A stretch of DNA of 64,000 nt from Takakia lepidozioides (Eukaryota > Plantae > Bryophyta): assembly GCA_030704615.1 (NCBI GenBank), contig CM060733.1, positions 20,894,001 through 20,958,000 on the forward strand, in the 5' to 3' direction. Positions 9,747-39,661 of this stretch are shown here, piece by piece. Within the stretch, counting starts at the first letter, position 1. The number at the start of each line of letters is the position of its first letter. The notes under the pieces are model-generated. The model did no database searches and was not told the origin of the DNA. It saw nothing but the letters and a program-made list of their open reading frames with translations. The position numbers were made by a program, and so were the translations under genes.

Positions 9747-10660
9747 TCAGTGCTCTGATTCGATGTGCTTCATATAGTAGGGATTTGTGATGATGGAAGG
9801 GTTATATGAATTTCTGTACGACGGCTCGTAAGAATGCGTATATGACTGTCCATATGAAGGCGTGTATTCGTTGTAGGATGTTCTGTATTCAGTACTGTCG
9901 TGATGTCTGAAATGTCGGTCATGGTGGTAGCGACTTTCCTCAGCTAACATGTAATCATCTCCTTCATACTGTCGGCTCAGCCCAGCAAGTGGTGGCGCAA
10001 GTGGTGGTGCCAAAATCTGGCCCAAAGTTGTACTAGGCCAGAACTGAGATTTTCTCTTCACACGCTTCGCCTTCTTTAGGGCCCGCAATGGATCTACGAG
10101 ACCAGTGACGGTCACCTTCTGCAATTGCGTATCGCAGACTACTCCCAGTGCACCGTCCAACTCCATAAGCTCTTCCCGAATTTTCTCTTCACACTTCTCG
10201 CAACACATTGGGACCATTAACTGTACTCCTGGAAGTATCTGGCGAGCCGGATTGTGTAGATGTACATTGCTGGAGTACGGAGAAACTTCATGAAAATGGC
10301 TGCGTGAGAGGGTCTCAGGGTAGTAAGGAGAATCGGAAATCTCGCGAAAGCGACTGTAGCCAGTGTCCCCATAAAAAGGAACTTCAGCTTCCCGAGAATG
10401 AAGACGAGTGTGGAGGGGATCTGTCATTGAGTGGTGAATATCGGGGTCTTCAGACCGAATCCAGGTGGGCTCGACGTTATTCCCATAATACAGCTGCACA
10501 ATCAAATTAACCAGTATGTCAGATTCTATTTCACAATATTGCAGACACAACAATCCAGCTCAACAGCTAGATAGAGCGAGCTCCAGAAAACAATGACTGG
10601 TAACCCACGCTGGTCGTCTTAGCATATGAAGGACCTCACCTCACTCATCTCCATCGCCAT
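9747..10660 (-). CDS. Heavy-metal-associated (HMA) domain protein, HPP-type, copy 1 (2 exons: 10660-10640, 10493-9747)
   Basis: 'VQLMVPMCCEKCEEKIREELMELDGALGVVCDTQLQKVTVTGLVDPLRALKKAKR' is an HMA fold with MxCxxC. Exon 1 MAMEMSE is followed by a GTGAG donor and a TGCAG acceptor in phase 0. There is no C-terminal CaaX. Confidence 0.88.
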
Positions 10661-15970: not shown

Positions 15971-18900
15971 TCACTTTTTGCAGTATTTCATCTGGGGTTG
16001 TTTCTCTGGTCTTAAGCAGTTACGCTTCTTCACATGCACTAAAAATCCGGTCACTGTTTCAGCCTCACAACAATCGTTTTCCTGGGCTCTTTGAAGAGAA
16101 GATTTGGCAACAGACAATGCAGGAGATTTGCAGGAAGCTTTGCCCTCCAAGAGTCGAAGCAGGGTTCTAAGGATTGCACTTAAGCTCTCAAACAATCCTC
16201 ACTAGCAAAATGCAGAGAGCTCCTTACATCATTCCAAACTCACACGCAGATACTGCTGCTGCCTTGAATTCCACAGATGCTACCTTAACATTCCCTCTTG
16301 CAAAGGCAAGGCGAGCTTTGAATAACTTGTAATACACCCATCCAATCTCTGTATACCATGCAGTTACACCCGGTCAGAATTTCGTCTCTCTGAAATAGGG
16401 CTCAAACATCTGGCAAATGCATATATGGAGCATGTCATACAACCATGGTCAACATAAGAGGAAAAAGGCAAATCAAAACCAGAAACCCCATGGCAACTAA
16501 AAGGGAATGTTTGCTTAAACTCTTTATCAGTAACCTGGCTTATGATTAGCTTTGATTACTGCATAAACAACGAATTCAAAAAAGTCAAGGCTTACTATTG
16601 CCACAACCGATCAGGCTACCATGTTTTAAGTTGTTAGCAGTGTGCACCGTGACATATGCTGAGATGAAACAAAAGGCAACATCAAATTCAGGGAAGAAAT
16701 GAATCCCTTCTTCAGTGGGAGCCTCAAACCTATTCGGGCTGATACCAATTTCAGTCGATCAAGGAGAAGTTCAACAACTCGTTCCCTCTCTCTATTTGGT
16801 GGATCCAACAGCGTCTGGGTCCCCACAGACAGCAGAAAGAGCTCAATGGCCGAAGCTAAAGCCATTGGAAACACTGGAGTCAGGGGAGTAATGTTGATCA
16901 GCTGTGGTAGCAACATGGTTGCTTCTTGAATAACCTTCTCCCTCAACTGTATATGCAGTGAAGCTTCCCATCCCACGGCTCTCACCTGACCATTCGTACA
17001 AAGTGTCTGCTAAGACTATACATCCATTTGTTTGTCAATCTGTCTCCTCTTTTACTGATCTAATGCAGTTTCTTTTTGTTGGTGTGAAAGCAGTGTGGGA
17101 AGGATAAGGGAAAAACCCCAGAATTGTGCCTTCATGTACACACTCCATACACACAAAAATGAACTGTTAAACGGCAGGTGTAAAAAACAGATTTCGTAGG
17201 GCAGTTCCACTGCAGCTTTCTGTCTCTTTTTGTGCTTTGGATGCCCAACAATCTAGAAGGTATGCAAGCTTTATGAGCTTCTTTGAGATTTTTTGCTGCT
17301 GCTAAGGCAGCCTGAGATTTTGTTGAACACTTGCTTTTAAAGTAGCATTTTTTCAGCCTTCACCCACTTTGTGTGTCGGATTTCTTACGGTGCGCCATTG
17401 TTTGATTTTAGGGATGGTGCATATTTACTGGTCTACTACCATTATTGCTTTTCTCTCCAAAATTCCTTTTTGAAGTAGCATCAAACATGAATCAGATCCA
17501 GTGCCGTCCTTCATCCAAACCTTATCTCAACTGTCCAAATTTGACACAATAGAAAGGTGGTTCAGTAAAATGGTTTCTCTAAGGATAAACAACAAAGGAA
17601 GAATTTGAGAGACCGGTGACATTGTGTGTGACAAGCAAGAGCTCAATACTGACCTGCAAAGCCATTGAAGGGATTGAACAATGACTGGTGTCGAGTTGAG
17701 CTAAGTTATCTACAGCCTCCTGGTAGTGTCCCATACCGCTCAAGCTCGCTATCATCAAGAAAAGAGCCCAAACTCGCAGCTGTGGGTGATCTTTGCGAGC
17801 TGCAAGTAGTCTGAAGCCCTCTACGTGGCAAGCTTCAAAGTCACCCTGGTCAACCAAGCAATGGCATCAAAGGACCAAATAGTGTGAAATATTAAAACAA
17901 GGGCTCTCCACACATGCCTACTAATCACCAATTGTCTGATGCCCTAAACCTTTAGCACCCACTGGGTGAAAACGTGGTATTATCATCTAAGATTGCTGTA
18001 AGCTGCACACCTGATACAAATGGCCAATGGCCTTCAAGCAGTGGCATAGATCCATCTCTTTTTGCCCATGGCTGGCCTCATACACCCTTATTGCCTGTGC
18101 TGCATGAGATGCAGCCTTTGACCACTGGCCTGAACAAATATCATACAAACAACTGTTAGCGTGTCTATTTTTCTGTCACTATACCTTCCCCAGCCTTCCA
18201 GAGTCCTCGTGTAGAAGTGGGGCATGAGACTCCAGAGTGCAAGAGAACTATTGAGTATATATCTGTCCTCCAGACAATAGGTCTACATCCTTGTTGGCAT
18301 ACAAGTCAAGTTTATCCACAATGGATTATTGCATCATTGGGGATGATGTACGTTATGACCAAACTTTATCTTAACTTTTCCAAAGAAACCAATTTACCTG
18401 TGGATGTCATAAAGTTTCTCTTCACTCCAGTACCTTTAAAGTGCCATTTCATTTCATTTCATTTCTTTATTTGATGTTTCTTTTTTTCTTGTAATTCTGC
18501 TTGGTGCCTTTGGCCCCTTGGAGGTTATGAAGTTTGTGCATTCCCTTGTTACTTTGTCTTTCTCACAATCTGGTGCATGGACAACGGCCCTGGCTACGGG
18601 AAGCAAAGTGTAATAAGCACATCTATGTCTGCCTGCAGGCCTGGTTCTCCACCTCTGTAATTATAGCCCTCCTTAACTATGCCTCACCCTGCTTCCTGTC
18701 CTCTTCACCCACAGCTTGCCAATAGATTACAGACACAGTACCGTGCAATAAGTAGACAGATGCAAGGTTGTAATGGATATCCCCAGCTTGCACTGGAATG
18801 TGTAGAGACTCCACTTGGTGTGCCAAAAGCTGCAGACAAACTCTCATGTGCTGCTTGGCCCTCCATGTATTGTCTGCCACTAAGGCCAGCAAAGAATGTG

Positions 18901-21900
18901 CCCTTGCGACTTCTAAAAAAAGTTCCTTGCCTGCCTTTTCAGCGACAGAGAGACAACGCCGGCCTATAACCCTTGCCACTTGAAGGTCCTCCTGTGTATT
19001 CTTTGCACCACATGATAATCAGCCAAAGTAATTTGATCACATGAAATCTGGTTTGCGAATGGCACAAACAATAAGTAGGGTTCATAAGGCTAAAAAAATC
19101 TGAGAAACCTCCAGATATTATCTCAACGTAGAGGATGTGCATTGACTTGCCTTGTTGTTTATGGGGAATGAGACCTTCTGACAGATGGTGAGCTACATCT
19201 AGACAGATATTCAGCTCAAAGAAGTATTACTGGTTGGTGGTCCAAAAGCAATTCATTGATGCTGGGAGGCCAAAGAAAGTGATAAGAGGTGTCCTAAGTC
19301 CTGGAAGGAGATTCATTCTCGAGAGTGAAACTAGTCAAAGGTAAGAGATGCACCCGTTGAGTTTCCTAGAGTCACAGGCTGCTCCAGACTCCACCTGATC
19401 TATTCCCTTTTTTTCCGGTTACTTGCGTTGTGTCTTTGTTTCCCATGAAGAAAATGAAAAAATAGCTGAAACAACCTTTAGTTTGCAAAGTGGGCCATGA
19501 TCACCATTTACGGCTCCTGGCATCTTCAGAGAATGCAAAAGAGAAACCAATAATAGATGTTGCCTGTGACAGTACAAAGAACATGGATGTATAGCTTCCT
19601 TATAATTGTACATGGGCACCCTTGAAGAGACCAGAGAAGTGGTCTATCAAGCAAACTATGAGACTCCAGCACCTATGAGTTCTGGTTATATGTATTCTGT
19701 TGGAAAACCACTAGCATGTGGTCGGGCTAGGGATTGAACCTAGGACCTCCCCCATTCCGGTGGGGTGCTCTACCACTGAGCTACCCGTCCAGTTCTATTC
19801 TCAGAGTGTCGTGCAAGGGCTATAGCCTTGACACCTCCAACACTCCCCCTCAAGGCATAGTCCTTATAGCTGATGCCCACCCATTCTGACCACCGCCCCA
19901 ACCTTGGCTCTGATACCAAGTTGGAAAACCACTAGCATGTGGTCGGGCTAGGGATTGAACCTAGGACCTCCCCCATTCCGGTGGGGTGCTCTACCACTGA
20001 GCTACCCGTCCAGTTCTATTCTCAGAGTGTCATGTAAGGGCTATAGCCTTGACACCTCCGACATATTCTGTATCCCATGATCGTGGTTTGGATTCTGTGT
20101 GTCTTCGATTGTTGTCACACAAAGAAGACTCGTTTTACACAAGAGAGGGTTTCCTTCCCCTCTGGTTCCCCCTTGGACATAATCTTCAATTTCTTCTTAC
20201 AGTCAGGGTGGCAGCTTTGAGGACCAAAATACCTACCTCTATGAGGTACTTCTTGGTTGGGCTTTGTTCGATGATTACTGAAGACATAGTTTTTCTTGTT
20301 GTTCTACTTGTCCCATGAGCCCTTGGGGTCCCCCTGTCGACATTATAATATTTCAGAAAATGACGAGACAAGGGAAGTGAGAAAGACCATTTACCTTGAG
20401 GATTGCAAGGCTTGCAAGCTGGATCAATGCTTCACATCGGAAGGCCTTCTCTGGTCCATGTTCACCACATACCGAAACATAACCTTTCCTCCAAAGCATG
20501 ATTACTTGATGTACAGATTCCCGCAGAAAGAGCCCTAGCCCACAATTGCTGCACCAAAAACCGCTGTACCACCTAGGCAAGGGATCGGCGGGAAGGCTTT
20601 CCCCAATAATTTTAAGTGCCAATATTGTGTGCTGCCAGCCACTCTCAATGTTCCCAATCGCAACATAAGCTCTAGCCAAGTATTGGTGCCAGGTGGCAAC
20701 TCGCATGGGGTTGATGTGATCTCGGACAATGGTTCCAAGAGAAATAGCATTTTGGTAGTAATGGATAGCAGTCTCATACTGCCCAAACTCGAGCAGGGAA
20801 GTTGAAGCCTGAAACAAAGATCAAACTGCATTTTCTTAAAAGACCCCAAATTAAGAGCAAATGCCTTCATAACTACACATCTATTTCCATTGCGTCACGC
20901 CACAGTAGGTTTCAAGCCATTGGACAAAAGTGAAATTTTGAAATACAATGTGAGGCTGGAATGTCTGCATATAATGTGCCACAAAAACTTTCAGGCCATT
21001 GCCCAAAAGTCTTTGGAGTTTAGAAGTTAATAGTGTAGCCTTAGTTCTCCGTGATCAACTGACCAATTTGAAAAGACGAGATTTTTTGTTTGTGACACTA
21101 TAGAGATGAAAGATGGAATCAATTGTGGTATGTGTTGATCCAAATTACTTTCTCCAATAGTATTAGAGATATACTTGAGCTGGAAACATGGCATCTGTTA
21201 GGCTGGAAAGAGTGTGTCAAATTAGTACTCCAGCTAACAGAGCTTTGTCCCTCAATGTAAGACATGTTCTGTTGACAATCAGATTAACATTCAGATCCTT
21301 GTTTGTTCACGAGTTTCTGATTCTTTCAATTTTGAGTTTGCTCAGTTTGGTAACTGCACTCCAAATCTATGATGGTGAGAGAAGTGAAGACTCTCTGTCT
21401 TGTGTTATTCAAGATTGATCATGCCCCAGACCTTCACCAAAAACTAGAGGAAAGAGGGAAGTAACGCACAGCTTTCTCCCAGTGGTCAATGGCGATAGCA
21501 GCAAGACCTATCTCTATTTCCTCCACATCCTTGCAAGCCATAGTACAGTGGTGGGCAACACTCACACAGCGCATGCCACTAGTCCCTTTACTGAGCAGCT
21601 CTTTGGCCAGGTCAGCATGAATGCTGCGGCGCTGCTTGAAAGGTAGCACCTCATATGCCACGTCGCGGATCACCTGCTATACATACGTTACTCAGTCATC
21701 TCAGAAACTTCACTAACCACCAAGCAGATTTGGTAAAGGAGAAACAGCGATGATAGTACACAGATGAGGGAGAAAGCTGATCACCAGAAATTACGATTCC
21801 GCTAGAGCTTCTATTCATAGTTTTGTAGTGCAAACAGGGCTATATTGTGGGGCTACCTAGGTTTCATCACTTTAAAGCCTCATCTCACATCACTTTAAAA

Positions 21901-24900
21901 ACAACAATATGGTGCAATTCAATGGTGAGAATTGAAGGTAAGTACCAAGTTTGAGAAGGAATAGAACCCTTCTGGGTCAGTGGGCCAATGTGTAAGGAAA
22001 TTAAGTTTGTCCAGATTCTGCAGTCCAGCCTGTAGCTGCTGCTTGCTCATGCGTGTAGTATTATCCCTGTATATTCAACATGGGTTCCATCAATGTACTT
22101 TCCCCATCAAATCTTTGGGCTTCTACCCGTGTCCATTGGGCCTTATGGGCGTTGCACAGACATAATGAGATGTTTTTTCCTTCTATTCTATGCACTACAA
22201 GCCCTTGCCAAAAGGAAGGAGGAAGCCACCATAGATGCAATTGCGAGTCAAAACAGAATGGGCGTCAAAATGCACACCTGTGAAGCTGTTGGTTAACAAC
22301 AACCAACAGCGGGTCAACTGAAAATTTAAGGCCCATAACACTTGCCACCTGGAGCACACAGTCTCAGATTGAAGCTGCAGCATAATGACAAGGTAGTTTT
22401 AACAATTGCCTTTTGCTGTGAAAATAACCGTCTAGCTATGAATCACCAGCTTGGTTGAATTCCAAACATTCAGTTGCAAATCTGTTAACAGCAGTTCCAG
22501 AAATTGGGATTGAGATACCTCACAGCCTAGCTCGACTCCCCTGTTGCCAGTGGATGGGTTTCATGTTCAAGGAAACTCACCTTAAGAATCAGTGCTTGGG
22601 CCGGTTCCAAAAGGTCAATACGAGATGTGACTAGAGCATCCATGGAATGTGAAAAGCTGAACTTGTCGAGATCGAAAATGCAGTTTGATGATGCTTCGCA
22701 TGCCTCCAGCATACTTTTCGAGTTGATGTTCATGTCAATTAAAGCACTTGCCATTTGCTCAGCAAATAGAGGATGCCCCTGCAAACACAGAAACAAAAGA
22801 GAATGGTTCCAATGAAAGAGCAACCTGTGACTTTTTTGTATTGCAAGTTGAAGGTCTTTCACCTGACTAAACCATACAAAGAATTCCATTTTATGCTGGT
22901 CTGGCAGGATCGCACATCCACCTTGCAACCAGCAAGAATGTAATTGGTGCCCTACATAAAGTAAAGCCATGGAGGGCACCCAAACATTGTAAGCAACAAA
23001 ATTTGGTCCATTTAACCAAACCCTCAGATTAGATGGTTAACATGACTATCACATTGTTTGGTCACTAATCCCTGCCAGCTAGCTTCTTTGTCAGATACAA
23101 ACTGACAGCATTCAACATCCGTAAGGAAGAGATGTAAGAGTGAAACTCAAAGGCAGTGGCTTTTCATACTTGCTGGCTTTGGTTTTCACAAATATGTTTC
23201 AATGTAATGTTGAGTTAGGTGACACCATTTCATGAATTTGAGATACGCCTTCTGCAATGCTTGTTGAACAATACTTCTCAAAGATTACCCAGCCTTGCAA
23301 ATCCCAAATGCTCTTTCAAAATGAAAATCTGAAAGTGTAATGCAGAGAGCTGCCACGCTGTAGCTCATTGACACAACAGGAAGTTGCCAGCATCCATGTG
23401 CACAATGTAGGTGATATGTTAAGCATGGTCATGGTTTACTTTTGTAGGTCATATATCGAGGAAAGTCCTCTACAACCTTGTATCAGAACTGTTACCAAGT
23501 TGCACTCTTCATTTGTGGCATACGTACATGTGTCCTAACGAAGATGGCCTCAAGTATCTTGTCAGGAATTTCTGTTGAAGCTTGTAACGAGAACCTGATC
23601 TTTTGACGAACCAGCTCTTGTGTGGCAATTTCACTCAGCTCCCTGTTTTAAGCAAGTGGAAGTTAGGTGAGAATACTGTTCCTCTCTAGAAAAGATCAGT
23701 TGAAACTCAACAGGTTTTCGTTGATGAAATTATAATCTAAAAAGTCTCTGGAACTATCAATCACAAGCTCAGCAGACAGAGAAATAGCAGCCAGAGAGTC
23801 AACTAACTGCTGCCTGATGAGGGAAGTGTGGCCAGGCTCACCCGCTCCAATGGAAGTAAGAGCCAAACTAAGATGAGTAGAAACTCTAGTCTCTACACAC
23901 CAGCACCAACCAAATGTCCTAGGAACTCAGCTCAATCGAGATCCCAACATGCAAGAAATTCAAGCTGCCATGATCCAGATCAAAACCCGGCACCAGCAGA
24001 TCACAATCTGATTCAATCCTACCAATGGGACATCTTTCCTTATCTCTCCAAATTCAAGCTGCCATGATCCAGATCAAAACCCGGCACCAGCAGACCACAG
24101 TCTGATTCATCCTACCAATGGACATCTTTCCTTATCTCTCCATCTCTGCTCACTCTTGCAAAGGACTTGCCTGAGATGAATCATCAGAGTGCTATCAGTC
24201 TGAATAAGGGCAGTGTACTCCTTGGGTGCATGGCACCCAAAGGGCCGGCATGCAGCCACTACCAGAATGCCACGTTCATGCTTGTTGGTGACTCCCTTCA
24301 GAACACCCCATGATGGCTTGTCGAGAAGCTGCCATGTGTTTTGTCAAGGACAATTGACGAGAGTTCACTTCAATGGATACCTGCTTATACAAACATTGCT
24401 TCTCCTTGGACTTACCTGCAAGTGTAACTAGGGAATGGAGAAAAGGATACATGAGCATCCTCCACAAAAATTATGCATGGCTTTGAAACAAGTGATAGTA
24501 AAAGCTCCTGAATAAGCCGCCCTATCCGTTGGACCCGAACATCCGCCGAAGCCCTCTTGCTATCAGACACCTTTTTGGTCTCTTCCTTTTGTTTCCAAGA
24601 CTCGGTTAAGTTTCTTCTGGAATCACCTTGTCTGTCTTTGGAAGAAAAATCCTCTGTTGAATGCGGCCTCTCGCCGTGGTTATCTAGTGAAACAGATCCT
24701 ATTCTTTCTTCCAATTCTTGAACTGCAGGCAGCTACAGATTTACATCAGTACCTGCCAATCAGACTGGAGCTCTCACTTGAATTTCCCCATTTGCCTGCT
24801 GAATCATCCACAATGGTAGGAACCGTGACAGGTCCCCTGCAGATATCTATTCTAGAATGTTCAATTGGATAAGGTAACGCAAAAAGGAAGGTAAGTCCAT

Positions 24901-27900
24901 CCACTGGAAACAGAGAGACAACAGCTTGTTTGTGGTTGCAAATGACTCACCAATCGGTTCGGTGGTGGAACCCAGCTGGACCGCCAGCTCTGCTTCATTT
25001 CTGGCAGACGGATCAGGTGCAGATGTCATAGATGAAGCTTTGGAAGATTTCATGATCTCAGAGACTTTGAGGGGACTCTTCCTCTGGGGGCTGATGGAGG
25101 AAATCAACGTTGCTCCTTGGGCAGCAAGCTGCAAAAAACTGGAAATGTGCCGAGGAACTGCTTCCTATAGAACAGACAAATCAATTTTGGGTACACATCA
25201 ATCCTTTCTGCCTACTGAACATACGGCTCTCTCTTTGATGAAAGACAGAATGTTCTAAAGTTTGTCTTTCTGTTTCCTTCTTTCATCCACCCCTGAAAAT
25301 CTCAAGGCTGAGCCTAAAGCCCTGGCCCTGGTGGGGTTTAACTTTTGGGCTGCTCAGATAGATGCTTGTGAGAAGGGCTTTCTAGAGGATATCTGGAAAT
25401 CCTGCACTAATTGTTTATATTGGGGTAAGTCACACTACTGGAGTGAGCTCCTCACAAAGGTAGTGCCTATTCCCTATGTTTCCGTGAAAGATTACATAGG
25501 ATAGGGATCCCTCCTGACATTATACGGGCCATTTTATCCATGTACAAGACTGTCATCGGCATGGTCAAGGTTGCAGGAGAGTTCTTAGCAGAGACAGCAA
25601 CATTGGGGTCAAACAAGGCTGCCCTCTCTCACTACCCTATTTGGCATCTACATATATGCTCTGGAAGGATACATTGTAGGGCAAGACTGCCTGCATATGC
25701 CTTCAGGCCAAATGCAAACAAATACACCTGCACCACCCTCCCACCAAAAAGTGGCTCTTCGACACGGTTGTCACTCTTGCCACCACTTATGGCTGTGAGT
25801 TCTGGGGAGCTGGTGTCCCAGTTTCCTGGTGGGAAACAAATCTAGGACCGCTGCAATCGCCTTTCCTCCAAGGGATGCTTGGAGCTAGAGGGACAACACC
25901 ATCACAATACTATGTGCAGAATTTGCATGTGACCCACTCCAAACCGAGGCCATCTTCCAGTTTACAATCCTTCTTACAAGGTTACAAGCCCTTCCACCCA
26001 GAGGGTTCACAGCCAGGGCCCTCACAACATCTATCAGGCTCAAAACAGCTGGCTTCAAACACTCTTGGTATGCTTGGGTGTCCAACTTTTTAAGCCCAAT
26101 GGACTCTCAATTGCTTCCCTACTGCCGCAAAATAAGGAGGGGGTGGATACTGCGTCCAAACAGGACCGCAATAGATGCATCAGAAGAGAACTTAGGGAAC
26201 TGCACATCAGGCGGACATGGAAACCAGCCACTCTAACAACAAAACTGCACTTCTATCAGGAGACATTCTTGGTTCTCCATGATGACCCCTCTCTCTTACT
26301 TGTTTCTTGAAACTGAAGAACACTTCTACTTTTATTACCTCTATATTACGAGATCCGTGGGAGATTCCACTGTCTATTCTGCGGAACTTAACTGAAGTCT
26401 TCCACTATGAGGATCAGAAATGCCTGGCAGCTTGCCTGCACGAGGCCTTGACCCTTAGACAATCCCTTGAGCAGTAGTTGCTTTTGGGCTGTTTCATTTG
26501 GCTCTGGTTTTGTTTCCTCTCTCATCTTTTTTTTTTCCCATTTTGTCCCATAAGCTCTTTGAGCTTTCCGCAGATGTTATAAAGTACCATTTCATTTCAT
26601 TTCATTTCTTCCTCTTGTCCCATAAGCTCTTTGAGCTTCCCACAGATGTTATGAAGTCCCATTTCATTTCTTAAGAGACTCCCAGTCTTTGGGAGAGGCT
26701 TTAGCTTCAAGCAGCTGAGGTGTCTGGCTGCTTTTTTCTCTCCTTTCTTGCTTCCTCCACCTCCTGTGGATATTTTCCTAATACTCTGTCATGCCCTGCA
26801 GGCTGATTAACAGTGGGTGCATGTAGAGTTGACAGTGGTGGTAATAACTTAATTACTCTGCTGAGTATGGACACAAAAGGGCACACTCAAGTTTGAGACA
26901 AGCTAGAGTAAGCTCCATCCCACCAGTTGGACATTTTGATTGCAATGTATGGCCATACTCACACTATTCGGATATATCCTGCAGGCCACTGACCCTAAGT
27001 CTATAGCATCCATATCATGTATAATTACGGACATATGACTGCATAATCCCCCTACAGTTCCACAATATTATGAGAACCTAATTTGTACAACCTAGAATCC
27101 TCTTTGAATGCTCTTCAACTAAGAATGTCTCAGTTGTAATCAGCAATATGTTAGGATTTTTGTGAGAAACTAAACAAGCCAAACACACCTTGTGCTCAAA
27201 ACTGTCCCTGGAACGTATCGGTGGATCGCTTTCCAATCGCTTGAAATTCTTCCCTGTGTTGACTGATGGAATTCGACTCCTCCTTGTATGACTAGGCTGC
27301 TGCACTAAACACAAGTCTACAGTATATATATTGCAAAATTTTGCAAACTGTCGCCTCCAAATACAACCATAACTGTTGGAGAGGAGCCTCCATACACGTA
27401 CTAGCTACGGTAGCCAATATTGCCTTACCATCAAGCATATGGACATGATATGGCACTATGCAACTTAAACATGTTTCAGCGACTTTGCCTAAAAAGCGAT
27501 GTAGCAGCAGTCAGGTAGACCCATAGAGATACTAAATTGTCTAGGCTTTCGTATGATGCATGTCTTATATCAGAGTGTCAGACTCCTGCCCATTAAGATA
27601 ACCCAGAACCTAAGGCACCATTTCAAAAAAGCTGGCACAAGTGGCCTTGATTACTCTCTTTCCTAGTGTACACTCCTTGTCATTAAGAATGTGGATATAC
27701 TACCCATGATAGCTTCTGTAATCAAGACAACTAGAGAGAAGCAAGAAAGAAGTTTTGGATCTTCACCTTAAACTTAATCTTTAGGATGTCCTTCAACAAA
27801 TGGGCATGTCGTATAGACGAGACGGGCAAATTCTGCAACACCAGCAGCCCTCTCTCTTCAGGGCTTGACCTTGGGTCGAAGCAGAAAAGGTCTCGTATTA

Positions 27901-30900
27901 CCCTCACCCATGGACCAAATACTAACGTGTTGTTTTGTTCAGGATCACTAGCTGTAAGGAGGACCTGTGCCCGTGCCTGCTGTTTGAGCCTACTCAGAAC
28001 TGACTGCAAAAGTTTCGATTTCCCAATTCCAGCATGCCCAATGACCATAATAGCTGTACAGGGTTTTTGCTGAGCTGGAAACCCAGAAGGCTCCAAAACT
28101 GGCAGCCCTCTACCAAGTTGCGATCCTGCCTCTGCTGCTCCACCAGAACCTTGCCCATCTCTGGGTTTGTCAATTTCTGCTGTCTCCCAAGTAACATCAA
28201 ATTCAGTTTTAACTACTCTAGTATCAACGGCAGCATTTGAGCTGGAAGAAGAGAAATGCACCAGAAATTCATCTATGTGTTGTATAAAAGTCTCGAACTC
28301 TTCCTTCCTTCCAATCATATCATCTTTCAAAACACTTTCAGGAAAGTCTTGACGCGGAGGCAAGGGCTGAGAAAGTGCAAGGGTGTTGCTGGAGATTTTC
28401 TGACTCAATGCACGATAGACATTAATGGGTCCCTTCTTCCCTTTCACCGTCATTGGTGGTAGTGCCACGTAGTCAAACAAAGTCGAGGTAGCAACATATG
28501 TTTCCATGTCAGTGAGTATCTGCAGAAGTAGCATTACAGTCAATTTGAGACGACTCATACAGGTACTTAATACTTTCAAAATTGCATCCTCTTGGACTCA
28601 CAATGCCCAGTTTTTGGACCCCCGATATTATGTCCTTTCTCGCGAAAGCTCCAAGGCAAATACTACAGTCCTGACTAGACAGAAATATGTTACTCCTTAC
28701 CTCATTCTTGGCCTTCTTCATAAGCCGAGCACTTAGGTTGATAGGGTCCCCAAACACTGTATATTCACAGCGTTTCTTGCCACCCACAAGAGTGCACAAA
28801 AGCTTGCCTGTGGTAACCCCAATGGCACTCCCCTGCCCTTTGTTCTTCAGGCTCTCTTGGATGGTCAAAGCTGTTTGAATTGCTCTCTTCGGATCATCTT
28901 CGTGCAGGTTACCAGGTAGCCCAAATGCACAGATCAACAGGTACCCTGCCACACCGTTCTGCTACGTTAGCAATGTCATGAGTGAAATTACTGGGATGAG
29001 CTGCTGTGTTGCTCCTGTAAGTGAATATCAAAGGAAAAGATTACCACTGGGAAGTGTGGGCAAAGTGCGCCAGCGCCAGGCAATGGGTTGCTTGAGCCCC
29101 TCGGAGATGCCATCCATCCAGATGTTTGGATCCAGGCAGAATGGGATACTACAGCTTTGGATGTCATTTGATGTTTTCTGAGGCCATTTCCATATTGTTT
29201 CCTATTTTCCTTTGTCCCATAAGCTGTTTGAGCTTCCCCTGGACATATCCCCTCTTTCTAGATCTTTCTTTGTTTCTACCTACACGAGGCCTTCACCCTT
29301 AGACAATCGCTAGAACATTAATTGTGGTTTCTGGATTTGTTCCTCTCTCATGTTTTCTTCCATTTTGTCCCATAAGCTCTACGAGCTTTCCGCGGACGTT
29401 ATAAAGCACCATTTCATTTCATTTCATTTCATTTGTTTGGCTCTGATTTTGTTTCCTCTCTCTTATTTTTCCATTTTGTCCCATAAGCTCTTTGAGCTTT
29501 CCGCGGACGTTATGAAGTACCATTCCATTTCATTTGTTTGCGTGTGTTCAACGTAAAGGTTCAGTTTCTTGAGGGTTGGACCTAGAGAAAAATTTGGTGG
29601 TCTCCAGCCATAGCATAAAGCAAGTATGAAAGAACTCCCAGGATGTCCAAGGGCTTCTCTAGCTGCAGATGCAGCTTTGCAGGCCTCACGGCTAAATCTA
29701 AATTCTTTGAGTGCTTGCAATCAGGGGCAAATGGGCACCTTACCCACATTCAATGGAAATGCTAGGTGCAGCTAGAGCAGCATTTTGCAAGCTTGCAACC
29801 TGTTGTGGTACTAGCAAGCCTAATTTATTTAACAGGCTCTTGGTACCACTGCTGATAGGGGCCCAAAGAAGAAACAAAAGTGTGAGACTCAAAGGGAAAA
29901 ACCACACCGTCCTCGCAAGCTACTCGTCTACTCTTTCACCCAGAGATGCAGTTACCGGCCTTTCCTTTCATCGGGCAATGAAGACCTCGTAGAGATGCTT
30001 CAAGTGAGGCAACTGGTACAAGAAGAGCCCATAAGCTCGTGACTCAACTAGTACCTGTTTCCAATGCCTCATTTCTTTAAGTTGTTTGGGTCAAGGAGAG
30101 AGCAGGGGTCCCTTTCCCATCACAGGCAGTTTCTGGAGGGCCAGAAGCTGAGCAGAAGCATGACCTGCATAAGAAGGATCATCATGGAAGGTAGAATGCT
30201 CAATGTCCTTGCTAACTCCCCAGATTCCATCCCTCTCCAGGTTCAGAGAATCTAGAATTGGAACAGATGTAACAGAGAGGTTCCTATCAACTGGACCAAA
30301 GATGAGGAGGCTACCCAGGAAGGCGCGTGCAGGCCACCATTGCTAAGTTATCAAGGATCTGGCATCCTCTTGATCACATATAAAGGGTGCTTCACCTCCT
30401 CTGCCCGGTGTTCTGGAGGTCTGGCTCTTTTTGCATCATGCCATCTATGCACTGGATCACTTAGTGGCAATCTGTAGTCTTTGGCTCTCTTTGACCACCT
30501 CATATTGCCATGCATGCCCTACAAGGTCATGGCACATGAGGGGCTTGTTTGTTGTTTGTCTTGGTATTCTTTGTTGCTGGAGGGCTCCATGAACTTTTTA
30601 AATCAAGAAAGGAAGTATGGTTTCAAAAAGGATAAAAAATGTCAAAATGTATTGAAAAATGTAATTCAGGCTAAAGACCGATGAGTTTGCTCTGACCTAC
30701 ACCATAACAAACGACAACTTAAAGGGTGAAACAAAGTTTAGCATGGCATCCAAGGGTTCACTTACCTTTCTCATCCATGCGGAACTGTGCAAGCGCCCCC
30801 TCATAGAGACGGAGTGATTGCTGCACTGCCAGCATGGCAGTCTGAACACGTTGAAGGTGCAGTGAGGAATCACCCACATATATGGACAGAGAAGGGAAGC

Positions 30901-33900
30901 CTACGAAGACGCATGTCACATATCGCACTTCAGCTCTTATCCCACTCCTCCTTGGGTTAGAAACCATTTGGCTGTGTAATACTTCTGGTAAATATCTAAC
31001 ACACACAAGCCAATAGTATCTTCAGGTCAGCCACATCATTCGCAACTTTCTTTTGGCTCAATAAGCCCTTTGAGCATCATGTGGATGCAGTAAATTTGTT
31101 CTTTTTCTGTCTCCGCCATCCTTATCAGAGTATATCATACATATTCTAGTCTCCTACGCTGGTAATGAGAAGTGATATATAAAGAAAGAAAGAAGACAGT
31201 AATATGAAATAATACTTTATAACATCTGCGGAAAGATCAAAGAGCTTATGGGACAATGAAACAAGAAAGAGAGAGGGACCCTCCACAAGGAGCCCAAAAA
31301 AAAACTGTTGTACAAGGGATTGTCTAAGAGTCAACATGCAGAAATGCCGCTAAGCATTTCTAATCCTCGCAATGGAAGACGTCTGGGAGAGATTGTGTAT
31401 GTTGGAATAGACGATGGAATCTCCCATGGATCTCATAGTAGAGAGGACTGAAAGAAGAGATGTTCTTCACTTTCGATTACCCTGTTGTGTCCAGTGCAAG
31501 TGGGCACAGGCAATCCTCACATTGCAGGTTGTCCCACCTACGAGTCTCTATCTGCAGACGGTGGGAGCCCACCCAACAGCCTTAGAAGAGAGGGAGATAG
31601 AGCTGCAGACAGGTAATTAGGCCCCAAGATTCTCATGGAGGACCAAGAATGTCTCCCAATAGAACTGCAGTTTTGTTGTAAGATTGGCTGGTTTCCATGT
31701 TCGCCTGACATGAAGTTCCAGAAGTTCTCATCTGATGCATCTGTTGTGGTCTTGCTTGGACGAAATTTCCACCCCCTCGTATTTGTGGCAGTAGGGAAGC
31801 AATAGAGAGTCCATGGTGCTCAAAAAAGTTGGAGACCTGGGCATGCGCCAGGAGGTCATGAAACCAGCGTTTTTGAGTATCATAGAGGTTGTGAGGCTTC
31901 ATCTAGGTGGTAAGGCTTGCAACCTTGTAAGAAAGATTGTAAGCCAAATGAAATGGTACTTTAACGTCCGCGGAAAGCTCAAAGAGCTTATGGGACAAAA
32001 TGGAAAAAACAAGAGACAGGAAACAAAACCAGAGCCAATATTCCGCCCCAAAGAAACTACTGCTCAAGGGATTGTCTAAGGGTCAAGGCCTCGTGCAGGT
32101 AAGCTGCCAAGCATTTCTGATCCTCATAGTGGAAGACTTCAGTGAGAGATTGAGTTCCACGGAATAGACAGTGGAATCTCCCATGGATCTCATAATATAG
32201 AGGGCAATAGAAGAAGAAGTGTTCTTCAGTTTCAATTTCCTGGTTGTGCCCGGTGCAAGCTGCGCATAGGCGGTCCTCCCGGTGCAGGTTTTCCCATTTG
32301 CCAGTCTCTATCCGTAGATTGTGGGAGCCCATCCTGAACCGCCCCAATGCCCTCAGGAGGGAAGGAGATAAAGGCGCCGAAAGGTAATAGGGCCGCAAGA
32401 TTCTATCATCACGGAGAACCAAGAATGTCTCCCGATAGAAATAGAGTTTTGTTGTGAGATTGGGTAGCTTCCAAGTTCTCCTGACAGGTAGTTCCATAAG
32501 TTCCCTTCTAATGCGTCTGTTGCGATCCTGTTGGATGTGATTTCCACCCCTTCTGGATTTTGTGGCAATAGCGAAGCAATAGAGGGTCCATTGCGAAAGA
32601 AACTTCATATGTCCCTGAGGGCCCGTCGGACAAAGTAGAACAAAACAAGGAAAACACAACCAAAGGTCCATATGCTGCCCTGAGATGAAGTGCCTCATGG
32701 AGGTTAGCTACATCTAAGAAAGTCTCCTACATCCACAGGAAGCCCAAGGACTTCTGGACGAAAGATTCAAAAGAGAGATGAACTCAGTAGACTTAGATTG
32801 ATTTTGGCTTATGACCATCAACCCGCACCCAGTTTGGATGGAGCAGGGAGAGAGGATAGTTGGGAAGGAAGGGGGGAAGAGTAGCATTGGGCCCACTACC
32901 ATTATTTAATGCTGGCTCAGTCAGGGGAAATTGGCTTCACATATGAAGTTGTTGAGGCCTTCTGAATCCTAGAATCTGATTTTTGGTTTTGAAAATCTCA
33001 TTCAAAACTTGCTTTCTTCTCTCCTACTTGCTCATGTCGTACCTTTTCAATGCAAGCACAAGCTTGGGAGCCAGTTTGCCTTCAATCTTAGTCCCGCTTT
33101 TCTGAGAAAGAGGAACGGTTACATGGCCAACCACATGACTGAGGCGAACAAAACCCTCTTTCAACACCTCACCCACACATTCCTGGTTGATATGGGCCCA
33201 TATCTCTGGAGACAAGATCACATCCCCTGCAAGTTGAACTCCATTTCAGCTTCACCTAGTAAACAATCCTGAGATGTGCTCAGGGACAGCTTTGATGCAG
33301 TCATCATCATGGGGTTGAGAAACACAAAAAGATTACTGACCGGATTTGGCATGGTCCTCACAGTGGCATAATTGATCAATTGGGTTGTGCTGGTTTTGGG
33401 CATCAGGTCCTGGAAGGAAAGGCATATCAGCCATGAAGAACTCCCAACGTGGCTGTCCAGTTGGAACTTGAACTCCCCCTCCCACACTCAGGGTGCATAC
33501 CTGCCAGACTAGCAATGTTCACAGTTTCAAAGAACATATCAAACCCCAACTGTTGCTCTGCCTCATGCACATAGACCAGGCAATACCAAAACACTCCTAA
33601 CACTAAATGAAGACAAGAACGAGATCATTTGGCCAAATCCCTGGCAAATTCAGAAAGAAAGGATGTTTAAGCTCACTCTAAAACCAGCACCAAACAAACC
33701 CCGCCCAGCGGCTGCGTCCCCTCCCTTCCACCTATCCTCCCCCAGTAAATTAAAGATCTGTCAAAGCATACAGGGACGTGCAAGTTCAATGGAAGACCAT
33801 GGTACCTCTCCCATGCCAATCATAACCTTGAGTGTGAGAGTGAAGGGGGCCTCCAGTGGGAGGGCCAAACTTGGTTCTGAGAGGCCTTGAAATGCCACCT

Positions 33901-36900
33901 TCCGCATTGGTGTTCCCTGCTGAGGAGATTGCTTCCTTGACGTGGGTTTGGCTACTTCATCAGTCCACTCCTGCCGATTCTGGTGGGTACGGAGCATACG
34001 AAGGATTGTGACCAGCTGGGACATTGTCACAGGCTTTGCCAGCAATTCATCCATGCCTGATGCAATGCAAGATTTCCTTAACTCATCATCATAGTGTGCG
34101 CACACCTGTGTAGTAGACATTCTCCATCAATGGCAATCTCTGGGTCTTACATGCACAAAGCACTGTATCCCCTAGCAACCTTTGGGGTTAGAAATGCTTT
34201 ATGATTTCTTTTGTCGTTCTGCTGTGTCACATGGACCTTTTGGACATCTCTTTCTTTCTCTCCCATAAGCATTCTAGGACATTATAAAAGATGCTGGGGT
34301 TTCTGACAGCGTCTTTCAGTTCTTTTGTAGTTCTAGTATGTCCACAGACCCTCTGAGACATCATAATTTGTGTATGACATGCCAAAAAGCTTATCACAAA
34401 TGAGGTAAAGAGAAGAGAGAAGAAACTTATTGTGTCCACAGTAGGCCCAGGGAACACCAATACAACAACAACACAGTTAGGAGCAATGAAGCAGTAGAAC
34501 CACAGAAACTTTCTTTCTCTATGACAATTCAGACAGATTGTCTTTATAACCTGGTCGATGACATAAGTTTGATAGGTAGTTTGGCAGGTTTCACTAAGTA
34601 GACCAATTCTAACCAAAGGCATGAGCAAAGCATAGTAATCACATAGCTTTCCCCCTTCAATGAAATGGTACAGATAGAGTTCATACCCCAATGATGTATG
34701 TGGGTCGCCTGCCTGAACTTGGCCACAAAACATGCACCCAGAATAGGCACCGGGTTGATAAATCAATCACAGTTCCAAGCGCATAGGTATATCTACATAT
34801 ATGTGCATGCTCTAAGGAGAAAGGAAACATCTGCTCAAGGGAAAGCAATAGCAAACAGAGGAAGACAAGAAAATCTGGCTGTTGCATTTCCCACCACCTC
34901 TTCTGAGACGACACAAACACCATAGAACAGCACTTCAACAGCAGCTTGGACGAAGCTGGAAGGGGTCTAATTGAAACCTGGACCAATGAGACCAACCATC
35001 ACTTTCCAGAGAGAGAGAGAGGAAGACTCTTGCTGAAGCAAGCATAACTTATGGTGTCACTTCACCCCAAAGGGCTACTGCCTTCCGTTCGGGAAGGTGT
35101 CCCCTTGGATCTTTCCAATGTATACAAAGATAACCTCGTGTCTCTAAATGTCTATGTGTATCTTCTTTTACTTCAAGTATTGCTCTTAATGGTCAACATT
35201 TGCGTCCTGAGTCGGTGTGCAAGATTTGGGAGACAGCATTGCAGCTGGCTTCCACTCTTTTCTTCAGGGCTTCCAGTGAAAGTTAGAAAGGGAATTCTTT
35301 CATTCTTTCACTGCAGACATAGTCCCAAGGTCAAGGGGTTAGGAAGGTTAGATCAACCTCACCCAACCCGACTGGAGACTGTCGCACTCGCCGGGTAGCC
35401 TCAAAGCCATCCATGATGGGCATGTTGACATCCATGAAAATGAGATGAAATGCTTGCTTGCAATGTGTTGCTACTGCCTCGGTTCCATTCCTGGCGAGCA
35501 CTACCTGCAACAATTAGGCTTTCCCTCGTCACCACTTTCCTCACTAATCACATTCTTTTCCATCCTTTTAGCTTCCAGTGGATGTCATAGACTATTCTCT
35601 TACTTACAGAAGGAAATTTATTTGGAGTCCTGTAGACAATAAATGCTTGGCAGCATACCCTTAGGAGGGTCTCCATCTTCATGCAATGTTTTAGTTCTAG
35701 TGCTTTTTGGTGTTAGCCTTCAATGTCTCATAAGCTATTCGGGCTGGACGATATAAAGCTCCTGTCTTGCTCTTTTTCCTTCTGCAGAGTCTATCTCCAC
35801 TGCTTCTATGAGCATCAGGAAGGTCCAGGGTGGGCTCACATAGCCTGTGGACATCACTACTTTCTGATAGATGCGTCAGACAAGGACTTATGGAACTTCA
35901 TGTCAGGCGGACATGGATATCTGGAAAGCCTCAACTACTTGTCTATACCAACCCACTGCCGAGTGAGCCCCTCACAAAGATAGTGGCTCTTCCCTTTTGT
36001 TCCACCCACACTGGGTGCGGGGTCTATGGCCACAAGGCTACAGCAAACAGCATCTTATGAATACATCTTGTGACCAATAAGCTCTTTGAGCTTCCTGTGG
36101 ACATTATAAAGCTCCTTTCCTTTCTGCTTCTCTTTCTTCCTCTTCCAGGAAAGAAGCATGGAAGGTCATAACTTGAAGACAAGACCAGTTGCAAGCATAT
36201 CTCATACTCCAGACAAATTTCTCATCTGTCTGGAAATTTCCAGGAGTTTTCTCAAGCAATTACTTCCATTAAGGCAGCCATTGAATTTTTCTTGGATGAA
36301 GGCATACAAAAAAGTCTTATAATTTCCTTGTGGTAAAGAAGCCAGTCTTACCTCACAGTTGAGTTTAGAGAGCATTTTGCTTAGCCCCACACCGTTCAGC
36401 ATGACATGGTCCACCACCATGACACGCACAAACTCAGAGGATTCTCTTTTCACCTTTACACCCTCATTCTCATTTTCGTTTGAAGTATTGCCATACCCTC
36501 CAAGCTGCACACCACAATATGAAGTAGAGAGTTACATTGGTGGTAATTGCACTGAAAGTTTTGTAGAGGTAGGCATCAACTAACTGGAAGATCTCCTGGC
36601 GTACTCTCATCTGTGTTGTCTTCATTCATTGTTGAGGTGATAACATTCATGCACCTCGATTTGGATCACTACATCAGAGTGGGGGGAAAAAATGTATCAA
36701 GCCCAGACGTGTTTGAGTAGGTGTCCACTGGTTAAGAATTATGCTGAAAACAGGGAAAGGCCTGGGAGCTCAACAGCAGTGCCCAACAACAGAAACCAAC
36801 GTGTGAGCACAAGGCACTACATTGACTAAGTAACTCATTACACAGTCCCAAGAAAAGCTCTCTATCTCTCAAACAGAATACTAATTTAAATTTTAAGATT

Positions 36901-39661
36901 TCTTGGCCCCAGTTATTAAAATGATGAATACTTTACACGGTAAAGTTGAAAAAGTGGGCATGCCTGGGGAGTGTAAGCACCAAGAGTTGACACCAAATCA
37001 AAGCCACATGCTGCAGCACGAAGGCCACAGGAGGCTTGACTCTGCGAGACAAAAAAATTCACTTTGCATTAGGAAGGTTCTCAAGAGATGCAAATAGGCC
37101 ACATTTCTTATTTCGGGGTTTTTTGGGGGTGGCGGGTAGGATTTCTTGCAAGTAGACTGTAAAAACACTACCATTTCTTGCTCATCCAATCACCAGACTT
37201 GACTTCTTTGAGACCAAGTTTGGGCTAATCTCTACACGAGGGCTAGTAGCACAGTTTGAATATTGCACTCCATATGTTGAATATGTTTAAGCTACAATTG
37301 TACTCAGTATAGATGGCCTTCGATCATCTACTCTCAAGCCTGATACAATCAGCTAGTCTCACCACATCATGGGTGCCAGCGGCAGGATGATCTACTAGAA
37401 GAATGCTGCAACAACCATTTGCACGCTAATATGTTCACAATTGCAGTTAGTGAAATAGGAAGTTTGTTTTGCGTAAATTCAGGTAAACCTCATTGCTTGC
37501 AATGTCAACAGGGAAGCAGACAATCATTGAATCTCCAGCAAACTGTGAGACAACATCCAAAAAATTTGAAGTTAGAGAAGCCCCGAAAGGCATGGAGGCA
37601 GGCAAGGAGAGAAAACAGACGTACTTATTAGACTAACTTGCAAGCAACCAATGCAGGGTTTCTCACTGGTCTTCTACAGAGAATACAAAGCAGGTGACAT
37701 CAAAAGTGTGCTTGATATGAAGAGAGGGAATAATACCTTTGTGATGTCGCCCCCATAGTCCAAGATCAGCTGGATAGCCTATACAGTGATATCATCCGAG
37801 AAATGGGTTAGCATGGGAATCAAACGCATATTGAGATCTCCTTCAGAGGTAACTGGCTATAGCCTGACTACAAAGATCTCTGCCCATGTCAAGTCTAGCG
37901 TCTGGAATTATTTCGGTGCCCTGGGTTTAGGGAGGACTAGTTCCAAAGTCCTTTCTGCAGATTTGCACTTCTGCTGTGGACAAATCAGAACCATGAACAA
38001 ATTGCAACTTCCTATAATCATGAGGATGGAGTTTGCCTGTGATGCTACAAGGAAAAGAAAGAGGAGACACAATTAGCCCCCAACATCATGGACTCTGGCT
38101 TTGAGTAGCAGCACACTAGACCCGCAAAGTTGGAATTGATCGCCGAGTAAGATTCCTGGTTGCTGATTTTTTGTGTATTTGTTCAAGGGACTCAAAGTTG
38201 GGTCATCCACTGCTGCACAGCGGTAATTGTCATGGCAATTTTCCATTCTTTCCAAACAAGCAGCAAAAGTTATAGTAGAAGCTCACAGTCAAATCGAAGG
38301 CAGACCTCGTCAAAGTAATTGTTCATACAGACAGTAAGTTCTTCCACAAGCTCTGTGCCACGCTTTGACGTCAATGCGCGCTCAGTTAATGGAGTAAATC
38401 CAGTTATGTCGGCAATAAGTACAGCTGCTGTGAAGCCATCCATTGATGGTTGTCTGGCAACTGTGTCTGCAATTCACCAACATCCAGCAGGGAAAGAGCA
38501 GTTTCAGAATTTTAAGATCCTGGCAAGTGCATGTGGCAAGTCTGTGTGTAGCAAGTCTCTGCATTGAGACAAAATCAGTGCATAAATCCAATACAGGTTA
38601 AATTGATTTATAACCAGATCTGTGATGATGTTTTGCTAGTTACAGGTTTTACTTCTGCTGATGATACTGGTGGCTATTACATCTCAGAAGCATAGAGGGA
38701 AAAATAAGTATTACCTAGCTCTTTAATTGCTTTCTGGAGCAACAAGCGAGAAAGATATGGTGTCAGAGTCATCAACTTGTCCCGGGATGTTTCCTCTCCA
38801 TCTAAGAAAGCAGGACTGGCTAGCGAGTCCTGCATTCCAATGCTCTCTGAAATAGAAATTGAAAGGTCCTCTGTGTCTTGCCAAGTTGGGAAAGCCGCAT
38901 TTTTAAGAAGAGATTACTAGAGAACACAATCTGCAGAAGCAACTCACAGATGTCTGGTTTCAAACATGGAGAAGTCAAACCAGACATTTCCATCTAAGCT
39001 GATTTCAAAAGTTTCAATGTGACAAAGGGCCTTACGTCTTTACCTTATAATCTGGATTAATCAGAAAAATACAACCCTAAACTATAATCCCAGCTGGTGA
39101 TGAACGGTTTTATACCATGAATGCAAAATCCTGCCAGCTCTCCCAGCTAGGTGTGTCTGCAAGCATGCTGCCCGGGGTTACGCTGCAGATGGAAGCCGAT
39201 TCAGCATCAAACATGGCCGGGGCTGATATCCTTCTCATTCTCATTGCATCAAAGGTAGCTGGGGTTCCAGCCGAAGGTGCAGTAAACATTAGGTTTTCGA
39301 CCTTAAGTGGCTTCGGGGGAGTCCATCTAGGACCCACTGAATTGATTTCACGATGAGGAAGCCTGTCATTGGCATCTAATCCTCTACCGCGATGATTCTG
39401 TTCTTCATTGTTACCATCTACACAAGGCAGGGGAAGTGGGCAAACTGCGTCTGAAGCCTCTCCACCTAGTTCTTCGTCTTTGTGTGCCCCTCCCTCTCGC
39501 CAACCATCTTGCCAATCAACAGCCTTCCCCCTCACCAAGTTTTGCTCGCAAACATCCGGCTGAAGAACTAACTCGACACAATTCCCTGACGGCCCAGGCA
39601 ATCTTGCAGAATCAGCCATGGTTCCATCTAGCCCCGGATCAGCCTGTACATCCTCTGACAT
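15971..39661 (-). CDS. Multi-exon soluble adenylyl cyclase (ADCY10/sAC)-like protein: C1 with inserted receiver, C2, STAND NTPase, helical/TPR-like repeats; 3' end uncertain (~15971-16230)
   Basis: Hand-spliced exons with phase-consistent junctions give, in order: 'AAVLIADITGFTPLTE...NNYFDE|AIQLILDYGGDITK|FAGDSMIVCF'; the receiver; 'LKVMIGMGE|V...RWEFFMAD...PIDQL...G|DVILSPEIW'; 'RYLPEVL...AEVRYVTCVF...FRMDEKG|YLLICAFGLPGNLHEDD...IGVTTG...RCEYTVFGDPINLSARLM|ILTD...VKGKKGPINVY'; 'MIGRKEE'; Walker A 'GHAGIGKS'; Walker B 'IIFVEDAH|LLDKPSW'; 'GHPLFAEQM'; 'SRIDLL'; 'IRDVAYEVL'; then helical repeats. Confidence 0.9.
19719..19790 (-). ncRNA. tRNA-like sequence in TRIM 3' LTR (pseudo-tRNA)
   Basis: GGACGGG TA GCTC AGTGGTA GAGC A CCCCA CCGGAA TGGGG GAGGTC CTAGG TTCAATC CCTAG CCCGACC A. 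It forms a cloverleaf with A and B boxes, one acceptor-stem mismatch and a non-canonical anticodon loop. Confidence 0.8.
19940..20011 (-). ncRNA. tRNA-like sequence in TRIM 5' LTR (identical copy)
   Basis: Same 72-nt sequence as 19719-19790. Confidence 0.8.
23957..24142. repeat. ~93-bp tandem duplication (2 copies) in a cyclase intron
   Basis: 'aattcaagctgccatgatccagatcaaaacccggcaccagcaga...gacatctttccttatctctcca' occurs twice. Confidence 0.9.
25900..26670 (+). mobile_element. 5'-truncated non-LTR retrotransposon (RTE-X/L2/CR1-like 3' end) with (ATTTC)n tail
   Basis: 'KQDRNRCIRRELRELHIRRTWKP...KLHFYQETF' matches ORF 32057-32698. It is followed by the family 3' UTR 'gtcccataagctctttgagctttccgc...taaagtacc' (twice) and ATTTC repeats. 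Confidence 0.8.
28410..30997 (-). other. Cyclase domain C2 with adenine-specifying Lys/Thr and transition-state Asn/Arg
   Basis: 'MDEKG', 'AFGLP', 'HEDD', 'IGVTTG', 'EYTVFGDPINLSARLM' and 'VKGK' in ORFs 30758-31006, 28509-28952 and 27731-28579. Confidence 0.92.
29210..29535 (+). mobile_element. Cluster of 3' ends of the same LINE family
   Basis: Three copies of the 'gtcccataagct..gagctt' motif, 'gaggccttcacccttagacaatc' and (ATTTC)n. Confidence 0.8.
31200..31945 (-). mobile_element. Older, diverged 5'-truncated copy of the same LINE family
   Basis: Reverse complement similar to 25900-26600 and 31946-32600 ('GLSIASLLPQ', 'LTLRQSL', 3' UTR motif at 31205-31255). Confidence 0.75.
31946..32600 (-). 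mobile_element. 5'-truncated LINE copy with open C-terminal ORF
   Basis: 'LGRFRMGSHNLRIETGKWENLHREDRLCAAC...IETEEHFFFYCPLY' is the C-terminal CCHC region of a non-LTR RT ORF2. It is followed by the family 3' UTR and a short ATTTC tail. Confidence 0.85.
33990..36440 (-). other. Two-component receiver (REC/CheY-like) domain encoded by 4 exons, inserted within cyclase C1
   Basis: Spliced sequence 'RVMVVDHVMLNGVGLSKMLSKLNCE|VVLARNGTEAV...FHLIFMDVNMPIMDGFEATRRVR...|RRPTYIIG|VCAHYDDELRKSCIASGMDELLAKPV'. The DxxMPxMDG and KP motifs are conserved. Confidence 0.88.
36982..38450 (-). other. Cyclase domain C1, N-terminal half (both metal-binding aspartates)
   Basis: Exon ending at 38306: 'AAVLIADITGFT' (Asp codon 38410-38408). 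Exon 37778-37737: 'AIQLILDYGGDITK'. Exon 37542-37489: 'FAGDSMIVCFPVDIASNE'. Exon ~37042-36982: 'SQASCGLRAAACGFDLVSTL'. Confidence 0.88.

Follow-up and report, generated by a model that had tools for sequence, protein, structure and literature searches.

We found that the moss Takakia lepidozioides carries an intact, transcribed plant gene with the architecture of soluble adenylyl cyclase (sAC/ADCY10) and the STAND cyclases, in which a receiver (REC) domain splits the first catalytic domain. The gene lies on the minus strand of the 64,000-nucleotide stretch analysed here (the window; contig CM060733.1, positions 20,894,001 to 20,958,000), and its 31 coding exons, from 39661 to 15605, form a single open reading frame of 2029 amino acids with no internal stop. 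The protein order is C1, C2, STAND NTPase and TPR, as in sAC/ADCY10, with the receiver in addition within C1. The following features were mapped:

15605-39661, minus strand: whole gene, ATG at 39661, stop ending at 15605
38715-39661, minus strand: exons 1-2 (39661-39116 and 38829-38715), N-terminal extension, aa 1-220, poorly conserved
36964-38466, minus strand: exons 3-6, first half of C1, with D240 (human D47; 38410-38408), K288 (K95) and D292 (D99; 37533-37531)
33998-36432, minus strand: exons 7-10, REC domain inside C1, aa ~357-475, with phospho-acceptor D408 at 35432-35430, K463 kept and the switch Thr changed to Cys
34687-34712, minus strand: micro-exon 9 (26 nt), REC strand beta-4, conserved in the homologous loci L001 and L003 and in Marchantia
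33043-33844, minus strand: end of exon 10 to exon 12, remaining half of C1, containing the pyrophosphate receptor K532 (human K144; 33829-33827) and, at the position of human R176, C584
28406-30995, minus strand: exons 13 to the start of 15, C2, with Q724 (human K334 position; 30787-30785), T793 (T405), N800 (N412), R804 (R416) and K838 (K451)
21595-28063, minus strand: exons 15-24, STAND NTPase, with Walker A (28039-28016), Walker B (24474-24451), sensor Arg1290, GxP (GHP) and the winged-helix motif IRDVAY
15605-21594, minus strand: exons 24-31, TPR-like helical repeats, last exon 15689-15605

The 31-exon model is based on three-frame translations, two homologous genomic loci (L001 and L003) and RNA joints. 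Its introns comprise 28 of the GT-AG and two of the GC-AG type. Ten consecutive introns, from 38714 to 33227, are exactly skipped by spliced contigs of two RNA-like runs from two studies; the exon 2/3 joint and the 26-nt micro-exon at 34712-34687 are among the parts confirmed in this way. Introns outside this region were placed by phase and homology, and the exon 1/2 joint by homology only. One contig of 1057 nt runs from C1 exons through the receiver exons and back into C1 exons, with at most one difference per piece; a separate, nested receiver gene is thereby ruled out. A preliminary description of this DNA had recognized phase-consistent exons for two cyclase domains followed by a STAND NTPase and helical repeats, and had suggested looking for a spliced transcript and for the matching Pfam families. 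Both were found, the matches to Guanylate_cyc, Response_reg, AAA_16 and TPR being on single exons; domain searches were run on single exons, or with database proteins as proxies. The start at 39661 proposed in that description stood, and its 3′ end at 15971 did not. The gene reaches 366 bases further, to a last exon (15689-15605) that is in phase 2, as are its counterparts in L003 and Marchantia, and is conserved in both. Compared with Sphagnum, every domain is under purifying selection (dN/dS 0.10-0.23, rough values because dS is saturated), and C1a is the most conserved part, with 85 percent identity.

On the plus strand, head to head with the cyclase gene and with 1.17 kb between the start codons, lies an intron-free gene for a 1188-aa phosphoglucan water dikinase-like protein (window 40835-44398; CBM20, pHis, PPDK_N). 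No synteny of this neighbour with the Sphagnum or Marchantia loci appeared in the DNA examined. Intron 25 contains a miniature LTR element (19698-20063) with two ~144-bp repeats that are three mismatches apart. On the minus strand, each repeat carries a sequence that resembles a tRNA (Rfam tRNA, 56.6 bits) with an odd anticodon loop, and the 78-bp core has an initiator-tRNA primer site and a purine tract. LINE 3′ fragments and a very high-copy short repeat occur in introns at 25450-26700, 29300-29560, 31250-32750 and 35960-36120; both RNA-like runs cover the repeat near 36000 very deeply.

The protein has two class III catalytic domains in tandem on a single chain, and the equivalents of the metal-binding, pyrophosphate and transition-state residues (D47, D99, K144, N412 and R416) are all present. 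On the minus strand the motifs are found at 38413 (ADITGFT), 37542 (FAGD), 30775 (DEKG), 28766 (EYT), 28742 (INLSARL) and 28039 (the P-loop GHAGIGKS). The preliminary description had placed the two metal-binding Asp in ADITGFT and FAGD, the C2 Thr in EYT and the transition-state Asn and Arg in INLSARL, and each of these assignments agrees with the human equivalents. The equivalents of D47, D99, K95, K144, T405, N412, R416 and K451 are invariant among the window, Sphagnum, Marchantia and Mesostigma. In the PDB, human ADCY10 alone gave a strong match to the cyclase core. The C-terminal STAND NTPase, with a low-complexity insert in exons 16-18, is followed by TPRs, and no transmembrane segment was predicted (maximum 19-residue hydropathy 1.75). 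The ADCY10/STAND-cyclase architecture proposed earlier is thus upheld.

Orthologues were found in Sphagnum, Marchantia, Chara and Mesostigma, and the receiver is present in all but the incomplete Chara model. The Sphagnum compactum protein CAM6045032.1 matches at 57 percent over the whole length, and Mesostigma Mv16533 at 43 percent over the cyclase-REC part. The S. fallax models (BDL97_01G115600) are 5′-truncated and begin at C2, as two of the three Mesostigma isoform models are also 5′-truncated, and Chara CBR_g8385 covers C2 onward in a model intruded by a retroelement. Four peat-moss metagenome loci (L012, L014, L015 and L016, at about 8000-10000) hold a truncated, damaged second copy that extends only over the first C1 half and the beginning of the receiver.

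A tree of the catalytic core (FastTree and aLRT supports on the best tree found, one bacterial row excluded) contains a streptophyte clade (0.97/96.9) that branches like the species, with the window grouping with Sphagnum and L003 (support 99). A chlorophyte clade is its sister, and the two together are supported at 0.997/99.8. One eukaryote labelled ADCY10 was placed next to the green clade as its weakly supported sister (0.79/71), in a tree without an identified animal sequence. The best explanation of these data is that the family was inherited vertically in green plants and can be traced back to the earliest streptophyte algae. Our searches gave no match in seed plants; these searches, which were length- and cluster-limited, also yielded no protein from Physcomitrium, ferns, lycophytes or hornworts. 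The preliminary description had argued against contamination. We agree: contamination or recent transfer is ruled out by the 30 introns, 26 of them at positions common with Marchantia, the species-like tree and the plant neighbour gene.

Based on these observations, we propose that the gene encodes a soluble, single-chain class III cyclase of the sAC/STAND type that is switched by its receiver and most likely makes cAMP. We consider this reading as a whole reasonably probable, and its first element, an active soluble cyclase, very probable. C1 and C2 would fold together to form one pseudo-heterodimeric active site, in which D240 and D292 would bind two metal ions, K532 the pyrophosphate, N800 and R804 the transition state, and T793 the base. 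In the streptophyte ancestor, a receiver of the hybrid-histidine-kinase type would have been inserted into the surface loop that connects helix 3 to strand 4 of C1, just before K532. The plant His-Asp phosphorelay may phosphorylate D408, and this probably switches activity. The STAND-TPR part may provide a second, nucleotide-dependent control.

The C1 insert is ~195 aa long and contains the receiver (Pfam Response_reg, 4.5e-10 on exon 8 and 8.8e-24 on the Mesostigma orthologue). When mapped via an insert-free cyanobacterial relative, it falls in the loop at about human residues 135-140, just ahead of the strand carrying the pyrophosphate-binding K144. The receiver is closest to the RcsC/BarA/SLN1-type receivers of hybrid histidine kinases. 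Its phospho-acceptor Asp and its Lys are kept in all five sequences covering them, and its dN/dS is 0.22. In Mesostigma the acidic pocket, phospho-Asp, switch and Lys are all canonical. The window receiver keeps D364, D408 and K463, with His as the second acidic residue and Cys as the switch; Cys occupies the switch Thr position in the land-plant receivers, and the second acidic-pocket Asp is missing in the window and in Sphagnum. With these two changes, the receiver may be phosphorylated weakly or coupled in an unusual way. In the S. compactum model (P0263, aa ~485-535) the receiver micro-exon is replaced by read-through intron sequence, an annotation error that lowers the receiver score.

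On this evidence we lean towards control through phosphorylation of the receiver. It is possible, but rather doubtful, that the cyclase is active and the domain a pseudo-receiver, an insert with a structural or protein-binding function, in which case the real input would be pH, bicarbonate or the STAND module. The Thr-to-Cys switch change and the eroded acidic pocket of mosses would fit such an insert, as would the tolerance of the same loop in chlorophytes, where it holds 100-850 aa of low-complexity sequence in which a custom HMM found no receiver, even a degenerate one. K95 is kept as well, and the R176 position is Arg in Sphagnum, Marchantia and L003. However, the phospho-Asp and Lys are invariant from Mesostigma to the mosses, the Mesostigma receiver is canonical, and the R176 position is Ser in Mesostigma and Cys in the window. 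The pair K95 and R176 marks the mammalian bicarbonate-activated sAC; the window protein has K288 and C584. Given this Cys, bicarbonate activation seems unlikely in the window species; it is possible in Sphagnum and Marchantia, where the Lys and Arg are both kept.

Bacterial relatives have nothing inserted in the C1 loop. The simplest reading is that the loop became insertion-tolerant in the green ancestor and captured a receiver in the streptophyte ancestor. P0132, a relative of 2055 aa that falls outside the green clade, has a receiver at its C-terminus instead and is an independent pairing of a STAND cyclase with a receiver.

The preliminary description had taken the Lys of DEKG as adenine-specifying. 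This Lys corresponds to human K340, in the FDKG loop (338-341). In human sAC, it is K334 that recognizes the ATP base (residue roles: PMC12867704, Table 1), and the position of this residue is occupied by Gln724, so that T793 is the one adenine selector kept. All the members examined from streptophytes and chlorophytes carry Gln at this position, as do 117 of the 233 other relatives fetched. K334 of human sAC reaches the base solely through water (PMC12867704). Because T405 is conserved along with the remainder of the sAC site, and K334 of sAC acts via water alone, the product is probably mainly cAMP. The earlier argument from the Lys falls, and an output of cAMP rather than cGMP is likely.

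We regard it as unlikely that the same enzyme is a guanylyl cyclase or a dual ATP/GTP cyclase. Dictyostelium sGC is a guanylyl cyclase with sAC-like architecture, and in the moss protein Gln replaces the base-recognizing Lys. A mycobacterial STAND cyclase has mixed adenylyl and guanylyl cyclase activity from a Gln-Asn pair (bioRxiv 10.1101/2024.03.06.583649), and adenylyl versus guanylyl cyclase was left open for the Marchantia gene (Kasahara 2016, PMC5159850). Against this, there is no Glu, and the Gln/Thr selector pair is the second commonest among the fetched relatives (64 sequences). Moreover, the protein has Thr as its second selector in common with human sAC, whereas classical guanylyl cyclases have Cys. 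Even if it made cGMP, the enzyme would be a canonical class III guanylyl cyclase in land plants.

The Marchantia orthologue is Mp3g24330 (Mapoly0178s0022). According to Kasahara 2016 (PMC5159850), the male-gametogenesis transcriptome of Higo 2016 annotated it as an adenylyl cyclase; Kasahara 2016 itself described the protein as without conserved catalytic residues and in need of testing. The public Mp3g24330 models begin within the receiver or downstream of the second metal-binding Asp, and the two metal-binding Asp are absent from them. An adjoining upstream model of 244 aa contains the ADITGF exon and the GGDIIK exon (L004 7463-9411, with Mp3g24330 at L004 10001-27220). A canonical phase-0 intron joins these exons to YAGDA, directly ahead of the annotated Mp3g24330 start, and the intron positions at the junction are the same as in the window. 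The predicted joined product of 2002 aa has the same REC insert and is 40.7 percent identical to the window model over aa 141-2015. The upstream model carries its own annotated last exon; even so, the two models look like one split gene. The 2016 verdict of missing residues would then arise because the C1 half sits in a separate gene model. A catalytically dead scaffold or decaying gene, once suggested by that verdict, is very improbable, since the missing Marchantia residues sit in the upstream model and splice in frame, and the window gene has 2029 codons without stop or frameshift and its strongest conservation in C1a.

Some UniRef isoforms of the Marchantia gene are auto-labelled ‘Adenylate cyclase type 10’. 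Among the papers searched, Mapoly0178s0022 was found in one (Kasahara 2016) and Mp3g24330 in none. We likewise found no paper on a complete plant sAC-type enzyme or on a class III catalytic domain interrupted by a receiver, subscription journals being thinly covered. The family is thus as little described as the preliminary description had supposed, although that text contained neither the receiver splitting C1, the gene's most distinctive feature, nor the tie to Mp3g24330. What appears new here is the complete plant sAC-type gene and the receiver inside its catalytic domain; the receiver-less architecture and a mention of the Marchantia gene are known.

Among land plants, CAPE has been presented as the first functional class III cyclase (PMC11032487). 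In Marchantia, cAMP is 100-fold higher in antheridiophores, and Mpcape mutants have unchanged cAMP in antheridiophores and sperm; Yamamoto 2024 (PMC11032487) concluded that other enzymes make cAMP and did not mention Mp3g24330. The family described here is a direct candidate for this further cyclase of the male organs. Whether it makes the bulk of the cAMP in antheridia and sperm, or serves vegetative or flagellate cells more generally, seems to us evenly balanced, because the family predates sperm. The CAPE-independent antheridiophore cAMP, the Higo 2016 annotation from male gametogenesis as cited by Kasahara 2016, and the lack of a seed-plant match in our searches argue for the sperm role. 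Conversely, the family also occurs in Mesostigma and in chlorophytes, neither of which makes sperm, the length- and cluster-limited searches returned none of the Physcomitrium, fern, lycophyte or hornwort proteins, and North American T. lepidozioides populations are known with archegonia and without sporophytes (PMC9021317). The sperm link of the preliminary description is therefore circumstantial. We are more hesitant about the complete hypothesis, that non-seed plants possess a true sAC-type adenylyl cyclase, switched by phosphorelay through an in-domain receiver, that is the CAPE-independent bulk source of antheridial and sperm cAMP and was hidden by split models; taken together, this is tentative and on balance doubtful. 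The family nevertheless provides a named, knock-out-ready candidate in Marchantia, and the split gene model explains how it was overlooked. A receiver within a cyclase catalytic domain, if true, would link plant two-component signalling directly to cyclic nucleotides.

The receiver-less architecture is known from animals, amoebae and bacteria. Dictyostelium sGC shares the sAC-like architecture and is a guanylyl cyclase. CAPE, of Marchantia and other sperm-producing streptophytes, is likewise a class III cyclase of non-seed plants, but consists of a PDE, a transmembrane part and a single AC domain. The moss gene has no PDE or transmembrane part, and no PDE domain matched the Sphagnum or Mesostigma orthologue; the two are distinct, as first proposed. 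Bacterial C1-C2-STAND-TPR cyclases (Chloroflexi, cyanobacteria, myxobacteria) have the same core and STAND-TPR part without a C1 insert, and about half of the non-plant relatives share the Gln at the K334 position. In chlorophytes (Chlamydomonas, Volvox, Trebouxia, Bryopsis) the same core and STAND-TPR part are combined with a low-complexity insert lacking a receiver. Finally, mammalian ADCY10 (PDB 4CLF) shares with the moss gene the tandem C1-C2, the absence of a membrane anchor, the STAND NTPase and TPR tail, and the equivalents of D47, D99, K95, K144, T405, N412 and R416, whereas the moss gene differs by the receiver in C1, Gln at K334 and Cys at R176.
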